Positions 48,927 to 64,000 of a DNA stretch of 64,000 bases are shown here, one piece after another. The stretch is from the NCBI GenBank assembly GCA_047495785.1, contig JBLDXI010000038.1, positions 806,001-870,000 of the forward strand. The letters run 5' to 3'. The stretch is from Lepidodermella squamata (Eukaryota > Animalia > Gastrotricha). Both the position numbers and the translations under genes were made by a program. The first letter of the stretch is position 1. The number at the start of each line of letters is the position of its first letter. The notes under the pieces were generated by a model, which had not been told where the DNA came from, made no database searches, and saw only the letters and a list, made by a program, of their open reading frames with translations.

Positions 48927-49439
48927 AGATCTTTATTTCGATGCCGGTTGTGACTGAAGCATTCCAACAGCTGCGTGATAGACACTTCGATCCGTTTTGA
49001 CTTTTGACTGACATGTAGCCAAGTGCACAAGAATTACGCTATACGCTATTTATTGTGGTATTTATAACCCACGACTCTTTTTGAGACAGTTCTTATTGCT
49101 ATCTCTGCACGTAACATTGTTTATGATTTCAGCAAATTATTTGGAACGAAAAAGGCTCGTGCTTTAATATGCACTGAGTCATTTGAAACGATTTATCTCT
49201 TATTTATGCAATAATTCAAGTGATCGATACATCGAATGGAATAAATAATAATTTTAAAAATGCTATGATATTTTACTCCCACCTCTTGCTGATTGAAAAG
49301 AAAAGTCGCTTTATCCATTGCATGATTAATTTTTCGGTATGCACTAACGTCTAATCCTTTCAGCACAGTGAAAACCCAACATTTCGGCCGAAGCCGATCA
49401 ATCAGTGCTTAAATTCTAATGATGAACCCGTTCCTCGTG

Positions 49440-49590
49440 TCTCTCTTCCTCTTCCCTCTCTGTTCTTCCTTCTCTATCTCCCATCTTCCGTCTACTCTTC
49501 CATATCTTCCAAAAGGAAGAAGATGAAGAAGGAAAAAGGGAAGAGAAGACGGGAGAATAGGAAGAATAAGAGAGGGAAGAGGAAGAGAGA
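49440..49590. repeat. Polypyrimidine/polypurine foldback
   Basis: CT-rich arm TCTCTCTTCCTCTTCCCTCTCT... followed by a GA-rich arm ending ...AGAGAGGGAAGAGGAAGAGAGA; the outer 22 bp are exactly complementary. Confidence 0.8.
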
Positions 49591-49651
49591 TCTTATTTCT
49601 ATGTAAACGCTAGAATTTTTAATCTTTAATTATCGAGTCAAGTCCTCGCCA

Positions 49652-52048
49652 ATGTATTCAGTGAAACCAGTAGTAGTGCCGTTCGAGAAACTCGAAAATC
49701 CTCCGAATATATATCACATGCGAAGCTATCATGACAATGCAACTTCCCGTGCGAAAGGCGTTGATACTCAGGATATCGTTGTTAGACAGAGTGCTGTTAT
49801 CGAACGACTGGAAAACTTGACCGATCGCATCAAGAAAGCCTGTCAAGCCAAAGGGTATGCTTACGAGCATGCGAAGTCGAATTTAGCACTAATTGTGACC
49901 ATTTTAAGGATTCCCGATGAGCTTCTAGCTTTGCTTGGCCAACCAACATGCTCGAGCGAATCAGCAAATCATAACGAGATCAAATTAATTTCTAAGAAGT
50001 CGAAGCCGTCGCTAGCAACCAGGTAACCGTTTAACTGTTAAAGTTGAACGCTGGTAATCAATATTTTGATTTCAGTCCGCATCAGTTTGACGGATACATT
50101 GAAATAGTTTGCCACGCTGTAAACATGCCGTTTTCGATTCTAGGTGAGTTTCAGTATTCAATGAATATTTAGCTATTGAGTGAAGTCAGTGAGTGTTAAG
50201 CTACATAGCGTAGAATGGGGTGACTGGGCCTATCAAAAATCGAATATGGCAAAACGAAGACCACAAGAGTAGGTACCGTTGCCAGGTGATCATTCGTTTC
50301 AGTTTTTATTGTTGCAATCTAAGCTACGTTCTTCCGAAGTGGGTTTATTAAGGCTTCGAGATCGGCTCATATATCGCCCTTAGCTGGCTCACGGTCATTC
50401 CACATCCATATGCCATATCCATTTGTGAATAGGGAGTGGTACTTCTTGCCACCAGATTTGGGTTTTCTGCCATGGGATTAGGGTTTTCCGGCACCAAATA
50501 TGAAAATCCAAAAATTGCCACTAAATTGAGGTTTCTTGCCACCAAATTGGTCTTTATACCACTGAAACGAGGCTTGCCACCAATTTAGGGTTTCTTGCCA
50601 CCAATTTAGTTTTCTTCCCAAAATCAAGAACTGAAGCAACTTTAACAAGATCACGGATTAAAATTTCGGTGCCGAAGTAGCGTTAGCCACTCGACCACGA
50701 ATGGCCAGGCCATCCAGAACAACGGATCAGTACTTCTTATCAATCGGCTTGGAACCATGCTTGTGCCCCATCATGAGAACATGCTTACAAACCTACAAAA
50801 ATTACAGATAGTTAACAGATAGACTTCGCCCACTTTGCAGCCTCTTTTAAGCTGGCAAAACGCGTATCGAACGTTTGATAATTTTTTAGGCTGCCCCTTT
50901 TCCGGCGCGTTTAACGGGCTTAGGTGTAACTTCTGACTCTTGAGATTCCTCTGATGTAGCTGGCTGAATGTTGTCTGATAAGAGGCGGAGAAGAGACTAA
51001 AGCAGGCGACGCCGGAGAAATGGACGGCGAGGCTTTTAATTGTAATCGCTTTCTCCCCATCAAGTAACATGTTGATTCGAAAGTAAGTTAGGTATTTGTG
51101 TTAAAATTCGAATCGTGTAGCAATTTGTGTTGAGGAATTTTCATTGAACTAAAGATTCTTCTAGACGCGTCTTACAATCGCCGGAAAAGGACGCCAAACG
51201 ATCGCGCGTATTGTTACGTTCAAGTCTTACCACGCGCCGCTTCTCTAAACGAGCAAAATACTCAGTTTCAGCATTTTTAGTGGCAAGAAACCCCAAATTG
51301 GTGGCAAGAAACCCTAAATTGGTGGCAAGCCTTGTTTCAGTGGTACAAATACCAATTTGGTGGCAAAAAACCTCAATTTAGTGGCAATTTTTGGATTTTC
51401 ATATTTGGTGGCAGAAAACCCAAATTTAGTGGCAGAAAGTCCAAAATTAGTGGCAGAAAGCATTTCTCCCATATTTAAGTGATTTTTCGCCACAGCATTA
51501 TCTGATTGGATTGCAATCAATGCCAACCTGGAAATTTTACTGTACGCCCATTCGTCACTGCTTAATGCTGGCACGGCTGATTCCCGCAAAATGGAATTAG
51601 CTCTGAAAAAGCTTGGCAACAGAGTTGCTTTTACAAATGAATCATCTAAACTTCGGCTGACGGTTCGCATAATTCTTCATGATATCAATTCGAACGGTAT
51701 AGTTTCTTTATTCGAATACGTCATGAAACAATTCATTATGTAATTGAAGCAGAATCTCGCAAACGATTCGAAATTTCGCCTGTGTTATTTTCTGTCACCG
51801 ATTATTCGCGGAATCAAACGTCCAGCGAATTGGCCGGTGAAACTATATTATATAGATCCATGTTGCGTTTGTGTGGATACCTACCGGACGATGCCTTGGT
51901 CTCAGAGATGACTGAATTTTCGAAAGCTGCTGGCGACTTGCTGTTCGCCTCTTCTAAAACAATCAAATCATTTAAACCGTTGAATCAGCCTGAATCTCAT
52001 ACGTCATGTGCGACTTCACTTTTAAAGTCCTTGCAAGCTGCTGTTTGA
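49652..52048 (+). CDS. AIMP2: Aminoacyl-tRNA synthetase complex-interacting protein 2 (p38)
   Basis: N-terminal MYSVKP (MYxVKP LysRS-binding motif), RQSAVIERLENL coiled coil, IEIVCHAVNMPFSIL...HSS thioredoxin-like part and LAGETILYR. Five exons with a ~1.35-kb third intron. Confidence 0.75.
50443..51460. mobile_element. Intronic foldback element with ~180-bp inverted arms built from ~21-bp subrepeats
   Basis: Left arm 50443-50615 (TTTCTTGCCACCAA... units) is the reverse complement of right arm ~51277-51460 (TTGGTGGCAAGAAA... units), including a shared unique segment. Confidence 0.85.
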
Positions 52049-56973: not shown

Positions 56974-58399
56974 CGTCACCCAGGGTTTCTATTGAACGTG
57001 CGCACTATATCGATCCGCACCCTCATTTCAAGCAGCAGCAGCGGCGGCAGCGACGGCAGCGCAGAAAAAAACAACGCCATTCTACTTGTATATTCCAGCA
57101 CCTCGAGCTGCCTGCGCTAACCAGTGGTATCGATAGGTATACATCGTCTCGCAAATAGCAGCAATCATTGCTTGCCACACGTTTAGTAGAAACCCGCCAT
57201 AATACAGGCATAATCGATCAGTATAATTTACTATAGCAATTTGGATTGCTAAGTTGAATTTATAATAATATTGTAAGGAAGTGATTTCTTTTGAAAAATT
57301 ACAAGCGAGGCAATGCTAATAATATGCGATCGATATATTCGTGACAGCCATATACAGCCATATACACATGTGGTTGTAATATCTACGAAGACCGCAGTTA
57401 TTTATGTTTATCATCTGGTTTCAGGCGGGGCAATCGATGTAGACGTGGAGTGTTCCACTTGCCATTTCTGTTATATTATTCCGGTTTTTGTTCGTTGAAT
57501 TTCATCCAATTCATTGGAACATGAGATTTTTTTGTACAGCTAAGGAATGCGGGAATCGGCTTCGTTCTTAGTCGAAGGAGATAAACGCCGAACTACATCG
57601 TTGTCAAACTGACGTTGCTGTGGAGCAGTCATGAGTTAAAATTGGACTTGAAAAGCTAAAAAGAACCTCTCATTGTTTGTTAGGTATTTGCAAGTTGAAA
57701 TAGATTCCAATTCAGATGTTTCAAAATAGAAGTCGGTGTTACTGTTAATGTTACGCTTGATGGGACTAATCCAACGACATCAGCATTCGGAGCTTGAAAA
57801 ATAATACATTTCAGGGTAATAACGAAGATAATTTCGAATCCTCTTTATTCGATTTAGGTATCAAATCATCAAAAACATTATAGGAAAGTTTGACATCAGA
57901 GATCAACACAGAATATTCATGAGTAAAAAACATTTGAACGCGCGTACCACAAATAATCGTCTACAGACTGAGATCACTTCAGCAACAACAATTTAATTAG
58001 AGACAGAATCTACCCTTCGACGACAGACACCTTTCAAAAGTGCTTCGAAAACCTACGATGGCCGACATCATTTTCATTCAGATTGAATTCAAGAATCATT
58101 CACGGCGTTAGCGAGAAAAATTATTCTACAACGTTTCCAACTTCAAGGGTACTATTTGAAATTATTTAAGATGAACTGACTGTAAAATTTAACTTGTGCA
58201 ATAAGTGTACTTCGCCTATTACAATTAAATGCTGAAAATCATGGTGTTAATTAGTGTTTCCTCGCACGATAATTAAACAAAACGCAATTATGTAGCCAAT
58301 CAGATAGGCATATTTTCTTGTAGCTCAATCGGAGCTATATAGTACACTGTGAAATAAACGCAAGTAACAAGAGCATAATTCTTGACAATCAAATATGCA

Positions 58400-60641
58400 T
58401 CCTTCGGTTTCATCCGTGTTGCTCTGAGTAAGCTCTATCGACGCCTGCACCTACATCAAATATCTTCAAATCTTGAACATTCGAACGTGTTGACTCTTTA
58501 GTAGAGGCCATTTTAATCGGAGCAGTTGCCGGCAGCGCCCATTTTACATCAACAGCTTCCAGATCAGTCCCGATACCTAGACAAACAAAAAATATTATCA
58601 GGACGCCTGGGGACTAGCAGCGTTCGATCACATAACGAAGCCTACACCGCATCGCCATGCGTGCAAGGAGCTTTTCAAACCATTAGTAACATGAGAAAGT
58701 CCTTTACGTTAATAATAACTACCTCTACCTAATTGTTATGCCGGTTGAGAAAGTTCAAGCCAGCGAAGCTCATTTCACCTCGGCAGAAATCGAATGAAAA
58801 TGAAAGTGTTTGAAAGCTCATGAGCAAATGTTTGACGTCCTATCGAAAGGATGATTTAGGAATGAGGGAAGGCCTATTCAGTTAAAAAGTCTTAGTTAAA
58901 GATAAAGCTACTTTTTGAAAGTTCAAGCTTATCCGCTACATTCAAAAGATTTCGCTAAGACAAAGCGGCAAAAAATGAAGATTTATTATAGTTGTTTATT
59001 CCTTAATGTTAAACTAAGACCTTTTCTGACCTAAGGGGAATTTTCATGAACCTTATTTCAATTTAAATAGAACGATTAATTCTATTATCATAGGCTTAAG
59101 CGAGTAGTGAGGTTTATACTCTACGCTGTAGCTAAGTTGGCTATCCACAGCATGAATTTCAACAGTTAATGACACTCACCTTCTTCGACATGACGGTGAC
59201 GGCGCTGCTCTGTTGAGTGACGATTTTGCGAACGGCCAAGACCACCGGAAGTAAGCCGTTTTAACTCACGGTACTTTTCGTAAAGAGGACGAACTATTTG
59301 TCGTTCCACTTTATCGATTGGTCTCCCGTAGCTGGATTCTAGCTGTAACAATGCACGCTGCAGAGCTGTAACATATAACAGCATAGCAACATAGAGCATA
59401 AACTCGATATAAATATTTTCCACCCACCTATTTTCTCTTCAATAGATGAAATGGAAGATTTCCTCGCCAGCAATCCGCTGTTTGTATGACTAACAATGCC
59501 AAAGCGATCGCACAATATTTGAACAATCCTACTGAGGTGAGCTATTCGACTGTTATGATGATCACTGATATGACAGCAAAGCAAAGAAATAATAAAAGTT
59601 ATTCTCAGCACTATTCACTCACCTTGTTCCAAGATGCAAATGCGTTCCTGGTCGACCGTTATGAAAACTCAGCGAATTTGTATTATTATGGGCTTGTAAT
59701 ATTGCTGATTTCGTATTTGTCAATTCATCTTTATCATCGGCATCTTCGGTTTTGTGGCCGTCATCATCATCGCCATCATCATCCTCAGGGCACGCGGAAG
59801 AAAAATCACATTTGCTGACACTCAGTTGATTGCTTGATTTACTACAATTGAGAGTTATTTCACGAGACTTGGAGGGTACGGATTCGACTCGGCTTTGTTG
59901 CTGTGGTAATTGAAGTTGTGAAGTAGACATAACAGATTGTATCGCATTTGCATCGATTGGCAAACGATGGAATAGCCTTTCCCTGATAACTGATCGAATT
60001 ACTGCGAGCCATAAGTTTTGAAAATCTGCATTGACCTGTCGATCACAGTCATAAACTTCGGCCGCAGAACAGCTACTGGGCTTCAGTATCAATCTCTCCG
60101 TAAGCTTTGTCAGCTTAGACAGCCTTGCAAGACCTGTTAGAGACTCTGGACAACCGAACAAGCCTGGGGCAAATACGACAGCTAATTGAGCAGCGCCCAT
60201 TCGGGTTACATCCGAGGACTCGATTAATTTGTTTAACATTCGTAAAATAGCCAAGGCTGACCTTCGGCTGTCAGCACTGATCGTAGAAAAGCTCCTGCTT
60301 ATTTGATTGTCAAGGACGGTATCCTGGACATCGGCGTAATCAAGTGTACCATCGTCCTTATCGACGATGGAGCCAACTGCCAATAATAGTGGTTCTGGAA
60401 GCTCAGCCAGTAAAAGCTTGAGAAGGCTAGCCACAGAGTAAGGGTCCGCGAATTTTACACCGCTGGTAAGATCTCGATAGAACGCGATCCCCTCATCTTC
60501 ATTAAGACGGTTTCGTAAAGCCTTGACAGACGTTTGATTAGGACAAACCCGGAATATACCTTCTTGGTCATGTCCGAAAGTCAGCAGATAATCACAAATT
60601 TTTTCTATAATTCTTCCAATTCCTTCGCTTTGAGAAGACAT
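58400..60641 (-). CDS. FAM13: FAM13-family RhoGAP protein (3' end uncertain)
   Basis: RhoGAP domain (EGIFRV arginine finger, DPYSVASLLKL...PEPL, RMGAAQLAVVFAPGLF) plus the FAM13 signature LQRALLQLESSYGRP..ERQIVRPLYEKYRELK at ~59260-59365. Confidence 0.82.
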
Positions 60642-61278
60642 CGCAGATGGAGATTGGGCACGATAAATATTATGCTCCAGTCATACTATCGGCTATCGGC
60701 TATTCATCATCGGCAGAGATTCAAGCCGCAATCGAATGGATCATTTGAGCCAGCATGAACCATTTCACAGCTCCTCCTAATTTAGGACAGGATTCGCGCC
60801 AAGGTGATAAATCTCATTCTCATCAAGGGAAGGATCGATTTTAGAGTTGACCAATCTTGCAAGAATAAGTCTTAGAAGAGGAATTCCCCTCGATAAATTT
60901 TTTTTATTAATGATGATCAATAATCAATAAGTATTGACGTAGATAGTTAAATAAAATATGTAAATCTATGTTTAAATACTTACATATTCAAAAATGATCA
61001 GTGTTTATAAAAATTAGAAAAATAATTCATTAATGAATCAGGGGTAGTCTGTTTGAGGGTTGTTTTAAATAAATAAGAATATGTATGAAAGGTGGTGCAA
61101 AGAAAGTTGTTGGGTGGAGGGTGGAGGTGGTGAGTCATCATTGAACATATTATCTACTGGGTCTTCCATAACATTTTGCTTACAGCTGCTCAGGACTCTA
61201 GAATCTCATATCGAAGCAACTAAATGGATAAAATTGGTTGGCCTATGTTTTTTAAAACGGTTATACCAGCAAGTTACT

Positions 61279-61705
61279 TCCGCTATTCTGATGATGTTGA
61301 TATGCAGTCTCAAACTCACCCTCCTCGCCTGATGAGGCAATCTGTTAATTGAAGGAGTCACTCCCTTCTCATGCTCGTGTTGACGTCAAGCGAAGTGTGT
61401 TGGAGAGGCGATGATCGAGAGCTATGAGCTATGGACACGGGTCTACGCGTGGCTGGCATTAAAGGGTAATGGGTGAAGGGTGATAATGTTAAATGTTACC
61501 CGTTACTCGCCGCATCCTTAATGGTCAGTAGCTAGTAGCTCGGGCGACCATCTAAGATCATCCTCCTTTGCACACGGCTCACGCTGAGGAAGTGCGGCTG
61601 TTAAACTCTTTGGAGCTTAGGTTGATCACGTCAGCTTACAACGGCCGGAGTGTCGTCTTGGCTCTTGACAAAACTCTTGATCTGTTCAGATGGAATTGTG
61701 TTTTT
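61279..61705 (+). ncRNA. Candidate structured RNA (long G.U-rich rod hairpin plus second hairpin) upstream of the TMEM184 start codon; class unresolved
   Basis: Nested complementary blocks: GTGTG/CACAC (61395/61571), GATGATC/GATCATC (61410/61556), ATGG/CCAT, CTAC/GTAG, GCTGGCATTAA/TTAATGGTCAGT (61452/61518), GGGTGA/TTACTC and GGGTGATA/TGTTACCC. GC-rich island in AT-rich flanks with no long ORF. Confidence 0.55.
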
Positions 61706-61741
61706 ACATTTTAGATTTTACCCACCGTAGTGTAGATTGAG

Positions 61742-63601
<1,860 letters not shown>

Positions 63602-64000
63602 GAACAGAAGCCTGTATTAACGTGGTAAATGTGTGTGTGGCGATTTTGGCTTCGCCGGCCAGTGCTTGCATCGCTTTCGAATTTGCACTCGCTTCGTCCA
63701 CTCGAATGAATGATCTGTATGTCTCAAGGTGATTGACATTTATTTATTATCACGGATGCGCCTAACTCGATGAACTCTATTTCTAATACTACTTATACTT
63801 TACTGTTCGTTATATGCGTGTAATATTGTTCGCATTAAATGTTGAATTTTAGTTCAAATTTGAGGTATTTATTTACAGTTAACAGTTTTGCATTTACTGC
63901 TTCCTTGTGGGCGTTTTTGTGGCGGCTCTTTTATGAATGAGAATGCAGACGCCCTCACACACGATGAAAATTCCAATCCTGTTTAACTCAATTGTTTCTT

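Follow-up and report, generated by a model that had tools for sequence, protein, structure and literature searches.

Young microRNA (miRNA) genes of the plant type are said, after Allen et al. 2004, to originate by inverted duplication of a target gene. In Drosophila, hairpin RNA (hpRNA) loci born from inverted copies of their targets have been documented (PMC10317233, PMC10292708). The locus studied here is an island of raised guanine-plus-cytosine (GC) content at 61279-61705 of a 64,000-nucleotide (nt) stretch of DNA from the gastrotrich Lepidodermella squamata (GenBank assembly GCA_047495785.1, contig JBLDXI010000038.1, positions 806,001 to 870,000, forward strand). That whole stretch is called the window, and all coordinates are positions in it. 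An earlier note, made from the letters alone, had proposed the island as an unannotated structured RNA, with a small nuclear or nucleolar RNA, a miRNA precursor and a new class among the options. The island is transcribed, holds no long open reading frame (ORF), is homologous to other loci and contains no Rfam family. We lean towards the view that it is a transcribed, degenerate (pseudogene-like) paralogue of a dispersed gene family with small ORFs; it is probably not a new class of structured RNA.

Transcription of the island was observed in two RNA-type assemblies from different studies, X2 and X3; the likely source of the window is a DNA run, X1. The X3 contig (61295-61684, depth 19.4) and the X2 contig (61298-61583, depth 58.1) showed zero differences from the window over 390 and 286 nt, respectively, and the sampled words of the island span were present at fractions of 1.00 in X3 and 0.97 in X2. 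Both runs represent RNA, as gene introns were spliced out in each, and carry-over of DNA does not explain the signal, since the X2 depth was 0 at 60928-61068. Because the contigs are identical to the window, and the paralogues described below are too different to be their source, the transcript came from this very locus. No ORF longer than 51 amino acids (aa) lay within the island and stops were found in all six frames, while an 83-aa ORF (61081-61332) overlapped its left edge. The unannotated RNA that had been predicted was thus present, as an unspliced, non-coding transcript. One X2 RNA contig ran from 61596 into a SMART-type complementary DNA (cDNA) adapter whose orientation does not fit a genuine end of an RNA, and is probably a library chimera; the junction indicated that the X2 library was SMART-amplified.

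The unspliced transcript is probably about 390 nt long, possibly extending to about 530 nt; read on the + strand, its probable direction, it would start near 61295 and end near 61684-61705. The + strand was weakly favoured for three reasons. The apical hairpin considered below folds only on this strand. Runs of four T occur on the + strand only at 61248-61253 and then from 61701 onward, leaving 61254-61700 free of them before a run of five, while AAAA at 61670-61673 is a TTTT on the - strand. Finally, T exceeds A, as on the sense strand of both neighbouring genes.

The island ends at most 37 nt upstream of the mRNA start of the TMEM184-like gene, and the earlier note had accordingly placed it in the leader or outron of that gene, ahead of an acceptor AG at 61713-61714. 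This placement was not supported. The TMEM184-like mRNA contig begins at 61722, which is position 2 of its record and is preceded by one non-genomic letter, and the ATG follows 20 nt further on. Among the splice joints of the RNA contigs, none was found at AG 61713-61714 and none linked the island to any exon. There was also no sign of this AG as a cis- or trans-splice acceptor. The RNA could still come from an alternative start of the TMEM184-like gene further upstream, belong to a long 5' leader of that gene, or be a promoter-upstream transcript of the bidirectional promoter, and its homology to other loci would then be functionally irrelevant. Bin depths in X2 would agree with this, as coverage, weaker from about 61190, reached the mRNA start with no clear gap, and the 89 nt at 61633-61721 averaged a depth of about 26, so that island and mRNA may be continuous. 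However, the X3 depth of the island stands against 0 over the TMEM184-like exons at 61774-63042 (13.3 over the 3' part of that gene), a contrast which argues for a separate RNA rather than an mRNA leader. The main mRNA contig, moreover, had a 4-10x higher depth and its own non-genomic first letter. We consider an origin of the RNA as part of, or as a by-product of, the TMEM184-like promoter improbable.

Homology to other loci of the same genome centred on a short core. Five further X1 contigs matched only 61387-61426, with 1-3 differences and depths of 44-82 vs 89.8 for the window's own contig, and one further X2 (RNA) contig matched the core likewise. The 30-nt loose ends on both sides of the core were related among the copies and to the window, which indicated a dispersed family with a well-conserved core and no chance match. 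Within the window the core was unique. No further copy was returned when the island was compared by blastn with the window and with two contigs of a relative, and a motif search in six-frame translations returned the island itself only. Fifteen-mers of the core and its flanks were not found in the full text of the literature. Nine metagenome matches to a 20-mer of the core were discarded as chance, being 20-21 nt long and lying on bacterial-type contigs of 50-67% GC. Two of the five paralogue contigs stood at about half the single-copy depth and may be heterozygous or polymorphic copies.

The copies suggested a protein-coding family when they were translated by hand in the frame GAA(61392) GTG TGT TGG AGA GGC GAT GAT CGA GAG CTA. 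The N-terminus of the family would then read M-S/P-K-P/L-S/I-EVCWRGDDREL-S/W-T/N-R-M/I-Y.., starting from a conserved ATG that precedes the core by 18 nt, and four of the five copies with a visible start were open for the 23-33 codons visible. A consensus of two or three X1 contigs read MSKPSEVCWRGDDRELSTRMYPQQAL, a second copy MPKLIEVCWRGDDRELWTRIYLKQAL and the RNA copy of X2 MSKPSEVCWRGDDRELSNRMYP; another contig, which contributed its 5' side to the first consensus, read ..DDRGPLNRIYPLR on the 3' side, and one copy had a TAA at codon 4. The first X1 consensus and the X2 copy shared an identical visible reading from the ATG on and were wholly different just upstream, where the X2 RNA continued for at least 20 nt. 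Since these two diverge upstream of the ATG and the RNA continues, the boundary of conservation is the start codon, not the start of the transcript. Synonymous differences among the copies were found in codons for Arg (CGG/AGG), Pro (CCG/CCA), Ala (GCG/GCA) and Leu (CTA/CTT/TTA). Judging from 30-nt flanks translated by hand, the family would therefore appear to be coding.

The window's copy carried disabling lesions. Alignment put ACG or GTG at the position of the family ATG, which was lost, and a 7-nt tandem duplication, found in none of the other copies, shifted the frame into an early stop. With one unit of the duplication removed, the window read ..ELWTRVYAWLALKGNG followed by a stop, collinear with the paralogues. 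A perfect cAMP response element (CRE) palindrome, TGACGTCA, was noted at 61381-61388, just upstream of the conserved core; GACGTCA was kept in one paralogue and not in the others.

Reading the island as a pseudogene-like copy rests on paralogues with an open frame, on the lesions in this copy and on a transcript from this locus, all three of which were found. The 50% GC and the "conserved core" would then be a legacy of what was once the 5' coding end of the gene (motif EVCWRGDDREL). In this proposed history the family ATG would have been lost and the frame limited to 18 codons by the tandem duplication, and part of the fragment may long ago have been duplicated in inverted orientation, leaving an imperfect rod.

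Several observations weigh against this reading. The paralogue translations drew on about 100 nt visible per copy, partly from consensus with an agreement of 0.83-0.84, and the differences between copies were not clearly concentrated at third codon positions. On the minus strand, too, a frame through the core was open in three of the five copies, so that either strand could be the coding one; in that frame the same duplication also shifts the reading, and removal of one unit gives TAG in place of TAC (by hand). No Pfam match was found for the ORF pieces of the island or for two translated paralogue N-termini, and a phmmer search with the 33-aa minus-strand ORF against 1.84 billion proteins returned no match. 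Expression of the island was about 16x that of the one paralogue seen in X2 (58 vs about 3.6, inferred from bin depths), a level that a dead copy would not usually reach. The good fold of the apical hairpin is confined to one strand, and the paralogues are matched far more closely by the 5' arm of the predicted rod (1-3 differences per 33-39 nt) than by its 3' arm. Such closeness of the 5' arm would be odd had the two arms decayed neutrally since an inverted duplication; it may stem from gene conversion or from constraint on that arm.

Folding was compared with shuffled sequence and with control tiles. The irregular rod of the earlier note did emerge as the minimum-energy fold of the + strand, at -83.7 kcal/mol and z -2.38 (equalled by 3 of 200 shuffles), against -68.1 kcal/mol and z -2.13 on the - strand. 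However, its bounds had been picked for good folding, and 23 of 540 arbitrary 236-nt tiles of the window (4%) also reached z <= -2.38; in this control scan the rod would rank about 13th. The whole 427 nt folded no better than shuffles (z -0.74 on +, -0.91 on -), and neither did the transcribed span 61295-61705 (z -0.56) or the left part 61295-61360 (z +0.8). A second hairpin that GATC/GATC can close had also been described, but its region, 61618-61690, stood at the level of shuffles (z -0.38 on +, -0.62 on -), and the closure was seen only in the minus-strand fold. The apical hairpin was the exception: at 61450-61536, bounds set after the fold was seen, the + strand gave -30.6 kcal/mol and z -3.30, equalled by 1 of 200 shuffles, and the - strand -15.3 kcal/mol and z -0.96. 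The argument that G.U pairs favour the + strand held for this hairpin and not for the rod as a whole, on which the two strands score about alike. The rod's 12:1 ratio of G.U to A.C was dropped as strand evidence, since a minimum-energy fold of a G+U-rich strand gives G.U pairs anyway. We take the fold as a whole, which lies near the chance level, to be incidental and not the reason for the sequence's existence. By far the strongest fold of the control scan lay elsewhere in the window, at 49424-49660 (z -10.7 on -, -7.5 on +), a CT/GA-rich inverted repeat whose two 22-nt arms, 49440-49461 and 49569-49590, are perfectly complementary.

The two arms of the rod may nevertheless share an origin. 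In a local alignment, the 5' arm and the reverse complement of the 3' arm scored 14, where shuffles scored 9.5 +/- 1.8 and 31 of 1000 did as well (P about 0.03). Collinear blocks ran through both arms, namely GTGTG, GGAG, GATGATC, GAGCTAC-TAGCTAC-TGAC (GAGCTAY.AGCTAY.GAC) and CATTAAGG (CATTAA(A)GG), and the 7-mer was doubled in the reverse complement of the 3' arm as well (GAGCTAC TAGCTAC). The arm-to-arm similarity was not reported by blastn. These likenesses suggest, marginally, an old inverted duplication made after the frameshift, which would give an imperfect rod.

Such an arrangement invites comparison with hairpin-RNA loci. The island might be a hairpin-RNA or young miRNA-type locus, in which an inverted copy of the family's 5' motif would yield small RNAs from the antisense 3' arm, and these would act in trans on the paralogues as regulators. 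In the rod, the family core at 61389-61416 is paired with 61556-61585 (about 24 bp in 30 nt), the doubled 7-mer occurs in both arms, the locus is well expressed, and the apical hairpin, which folds clearly on the + strand only, has a pre-miRNA-like size (61462-61519, 21 bp, 8-nt loop). As double-stranded RNA, though, the arms are poor, with a longest helix of 8 bp and many bulges, and the fold strength of the whole rod and the alignment of its arms, at the values given above, tell against such a locus. No A-to-G differences were seen in the RNA contigs, and the Rfam search matched no known miRNA family. Of the hairpin or miRNA precursor suggested earlier, then, the apical hairpin stood out on the + strand while the full rod remained near background, and we regard a locus of this type as unlikely. 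Slightly less likely still would be a lineage-specific hairpin-RNA gene of intermediate age, whose RNA would be kept as a source of small RNAs or as an antisense decoy controlling the paralogues, even though such a gene would explain the paralogue-like 5' arm, the apical hairpin folding on one strand, and the "dead" copy being the best expressed.

The dispersed copies could alternatively belong to a lineage-specific, multi-copy family of non-coding RNA, perhaps transcribed by RNA polymerase III (Pol III) on the + strand, the ORF reading of the paralogues being accidental. Over at least six loci the core was kept while the flanks diverged, and at least two loci were expressed. The run of five T lies 17 nt past the end of the X3 contig, behind a + strand free of four-T runs; the TATA-like TTATAC and TTTTTTAAAA are found 28-46 nt ahead of 61295, and both RNA assemblies break at 61295-61298. 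The chance of such a stretch without four T is, however, about 0.1 by estimate, and conservation between the copies has its limit at an ATG within the transcript, not at the transcript start. The fold lies near background; the libraries appear to be of the poly(A)/SMART type, given the SMART adapter at a loose end; and neither an Rfam hit nor a tRNA-like head was found. A family of this kind seems to us a doubtful explanation, about on a par with a hairpin gene of intermediate age.

Searches for known RNA classes in the island were negative. Rfam models gave nothing in the island at E<=10, either in a 6-kb search (58000-64000) or with 491 bases alone (61240-61730), and no hit at the gathering score in the whole window, and ARAGORN reported no tRNA-like gene in the island. 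Weak hits of snoRNA (small nucleolar RNA) models at 59663-59792 on the - strand (E 0.2-8, far below the gathering score) fell on GATGATGA-type repeats in the RhoGAP coding sequence and are most likely chance. By-eye likenesses of the family to the U1 5' end and stem-loops, the 7SK 5' hairpin, U3 box C, tRNA A and B boxes and a hammerhead core were rejected, being mutually incompatible and supported by no model.

The short motifs on which the earlier note had built its case are all where it placed them, by a check of the sequence, and they had led it to a long box C/D small Cajal body-specific RNA (scaRNA) or a small nuclear RNA (snRNA) like 7SK. The island carries RUGAUGA-like and CUGA motifs, as box C/D RNAs do, and the terminal T run and a GAUC/GAUC pairing in a long hairpin recall 7SK; GAUGAUC at 61410-61416 pairs with GAUCAUC at 61556-61562 in the fold. 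The island is close in size to arthropod 7SK, at about 400 nt. Neither option was supported. No snoRNA, scaRNA or 7SK model (RF00100, RF01052) matched at E<=10, and the same segment is the start of an ORF in the paralogues. The RNA contigs start at 61295 and 61298, downstream of the C box at 61288, which they do not include; the flanks of 61329 and 61584 give only about 2 bp of a C/D terminal stem (by hand), and GCCUGAUGAGGC forms a small hairpin of its own. Counted from the left end of the RNA, the GAUC pair is reached after about 118 nt, whereas 7SK has its GAUC pair in the 5'-terminal hairpin. GATC is a self-complementary 4-mer, and four copies were seen where about 1.7 are expected by chance. 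Of the features of a Pol III gene, TATA-like sequences lie upstream and the run of five T follows the RNA, and the 3' region at 61618-61690 folds at the level of shuffles. We therefore regard membership of either class as hardly credible.

Dispersed copies had been put forward in the earlier note as the sign that would unmask the element as a decayed foldback transposon. At least five other loci were indeed found, but they have the look of ORF-bearing paralogues and not of a foldback transposon. A decayed foldback element, or one of the miniature inverted-repeat transposable element (MITE) type, transcribed by chance, would account for the inverted-repeat character of the structure and for the dispersed copies, four of the five other contigs being short (256-582 nt) and two at about half the single-copy depth, as repeats or polymorphic insertions could be. 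The absence of the island from the orthologous spacer of the nearest reachable relative, which holds a different MITE-like palindrome, would also fit. Against this, no terminal inverted repeat with target-site duplication was found at 61359/61594 or 61279/61695 (by hand), no matching inverted pair emerged from the repeat search, and what the copies have in common is an internal, ORF-like part, not their termini. These copies, besides, are old and divergent. A transposon origin is thus very unlikely in our judgement.

The relative is represented by a metagenome-assembled genome from ENA, with identities of 67% for PRPF40 and 63% for a TMEM184 exon. The RhoGAP/TMEM184 synteny was kept on its contig L011, whose spacer showed no GC island (GC <=0.38) and no similarity to the candidate, though at 63-67% protein identity and 66-80% nucleotide identity in exons the relative is too distant for an empty-site test, or to support or refute conservation. 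The palindromic, MITE-like element in that spacer, about 200 nt long (L011 4040-4250), had terminal inverted repeats CGTCCCTAGG(G)GAAAAA and internal CCTACTAGG-type repeats. In both species a tract rich in G on the + strand lay a few hundred nt upstream of the TMEM184-like ATG (window 61080-61150, GC skew +0.44 to +0.47; L011 4300-4700, +0.33 to +0.54), which may be a shared promoter feature.

The island occupies a 1.1-kb spacer from which a RhoGAP gene (-) and the TMEM184-like gene (+) diverge; the coordinates are collected in the table. Protein domains in the window included Ig, prominin, PRPF40 and RhoGAP, with GT..AG introns of 50-105 nt, and PF03619 is carried by proteins related to the TMEM184-like product. 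The description of a GC-rich island in AT-rich DNA was borne out, with a GC fraction of 0.50 at 61295-61684 against 0.26 (60800-61080) and 0.40 (61081-61294) on the left and 0.33 (61685-61741) on the right; 0.50 is in line with the exons of the window (0.45-0.53).

Table. Features of the island and its neighbours, in window coordinates.
Feature	Position	Strand	Details
Unspliced RNA	61295..61684	not given by contigs, + weakly favoured	two RNA assemblies
Segment shared with at least 5 further loci of the same genome and with one further expressed copy (homology)	61357..61455	+	best-conserved core 61387-61425
Residual 18-codon ORF MLVLTSSEVCWRGDDREL, then stop	61371..61427	+	ATG 61371; keeps the family N-terminal motif
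7-nt tandem duplication GAGCTAT GAGCTAT	61419..61432	+	shifts the frame, makes TGA 61425-61427; none in other copies
Predicted irregular rod	61359..61594	+	minimum-energy fold: 83 pairs, 20 short helices, longest 8 bp, 12 G.U
Apical hairpin	61452..61529	+	28 pairs, 8 G.U; only part folding clearly better than shuffles, + strand only
3' arm, a possible inverted copy of the 5' arm, old and decayed	61524..61594	+	arm alignment
CTGATGA (C-box-like)	61288-61294; 61329-61335	+	sequence
CTGA (D-box-like)	61584-61587	+	sequence
CTTGATCT	61676-61683	+	sequence
GATC, four copies	61413, 61556, 61624, 61679	+	sequence
AG, proposed acceptor	61713-61714	+	sequence
Run of five T	61701-61705	+	earliest run of at least four T on + after 61253
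RhoGAP-domain gene, divergent neighbour	59619..60792	-	PF00620, E 2.9e-21; ATG 60641; X2 RNA contig 59800-60792
TMEM184-like gene (Pfam Solute_trans_a), exon 1	61722..61879	+	X2 mRNA contig, depth 246; ATG 61742; then joint 61879>61939

For annotation, the locus adds an unannotated non-coding transcript between two divergent genes, which marks a dispersed family with small ORFs. It also illustrates that an island of high GC in AT-rich DNA, however "nicely pairing", can be the debris of a gene and not a structured RNA. If the hairpin reading were true, the locus would add to the cases in flies, plants and mouse oocytes another regulatory hairpin that arose as an inverted copy of its target family, and the origin of such loci would become testable in a little-studied animal lineage.

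Set beside the systems it resembles, the island departs from each in some respect. From 7SK it differs in that its hairpin is not 5'-terminal and its sequence is homologous to a multi-copy ORF family, with no match to the covariance models. A box C/D snoRNA or scaRNA would have a terminal stem and kink-turn arrangement, whereas the island has none and matches no model, its RNA measures at least about 390 nt, and one "C box" falls outside that RNA. It resembles foldback and MITE elements in its inverted-repeat architecture, in having related copies at dispersed sites and in being absent from the corresponding spacer of a distant relative with the same synteny, but no terminal repeats with target-site duplication were found in the island and the common part is internal and ORF-like. 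With Drosophila hpRNA loci and young miRNA loci of plants it would have in common a sense and an antisense copy of the most conserved piece of a multi-copy family on one transcript; known hpRNAs, however, have long, near-perfect arms and abundant small interfering RNAs, while the arms of the island are about 100 nt long, about 70% paired and statistically marginal. Unlike transcribed pseudogenes and long non-coding RNAs (lncRNAs) derived from pseudogenes, the island shows visible homology over about 100 nt only, expression above that of the visible paralogue and a possible internal inverted copy. Like them, it has ORF-bearing paralogues, disabling lesions, an exon-like GC content and unspliced transcription.

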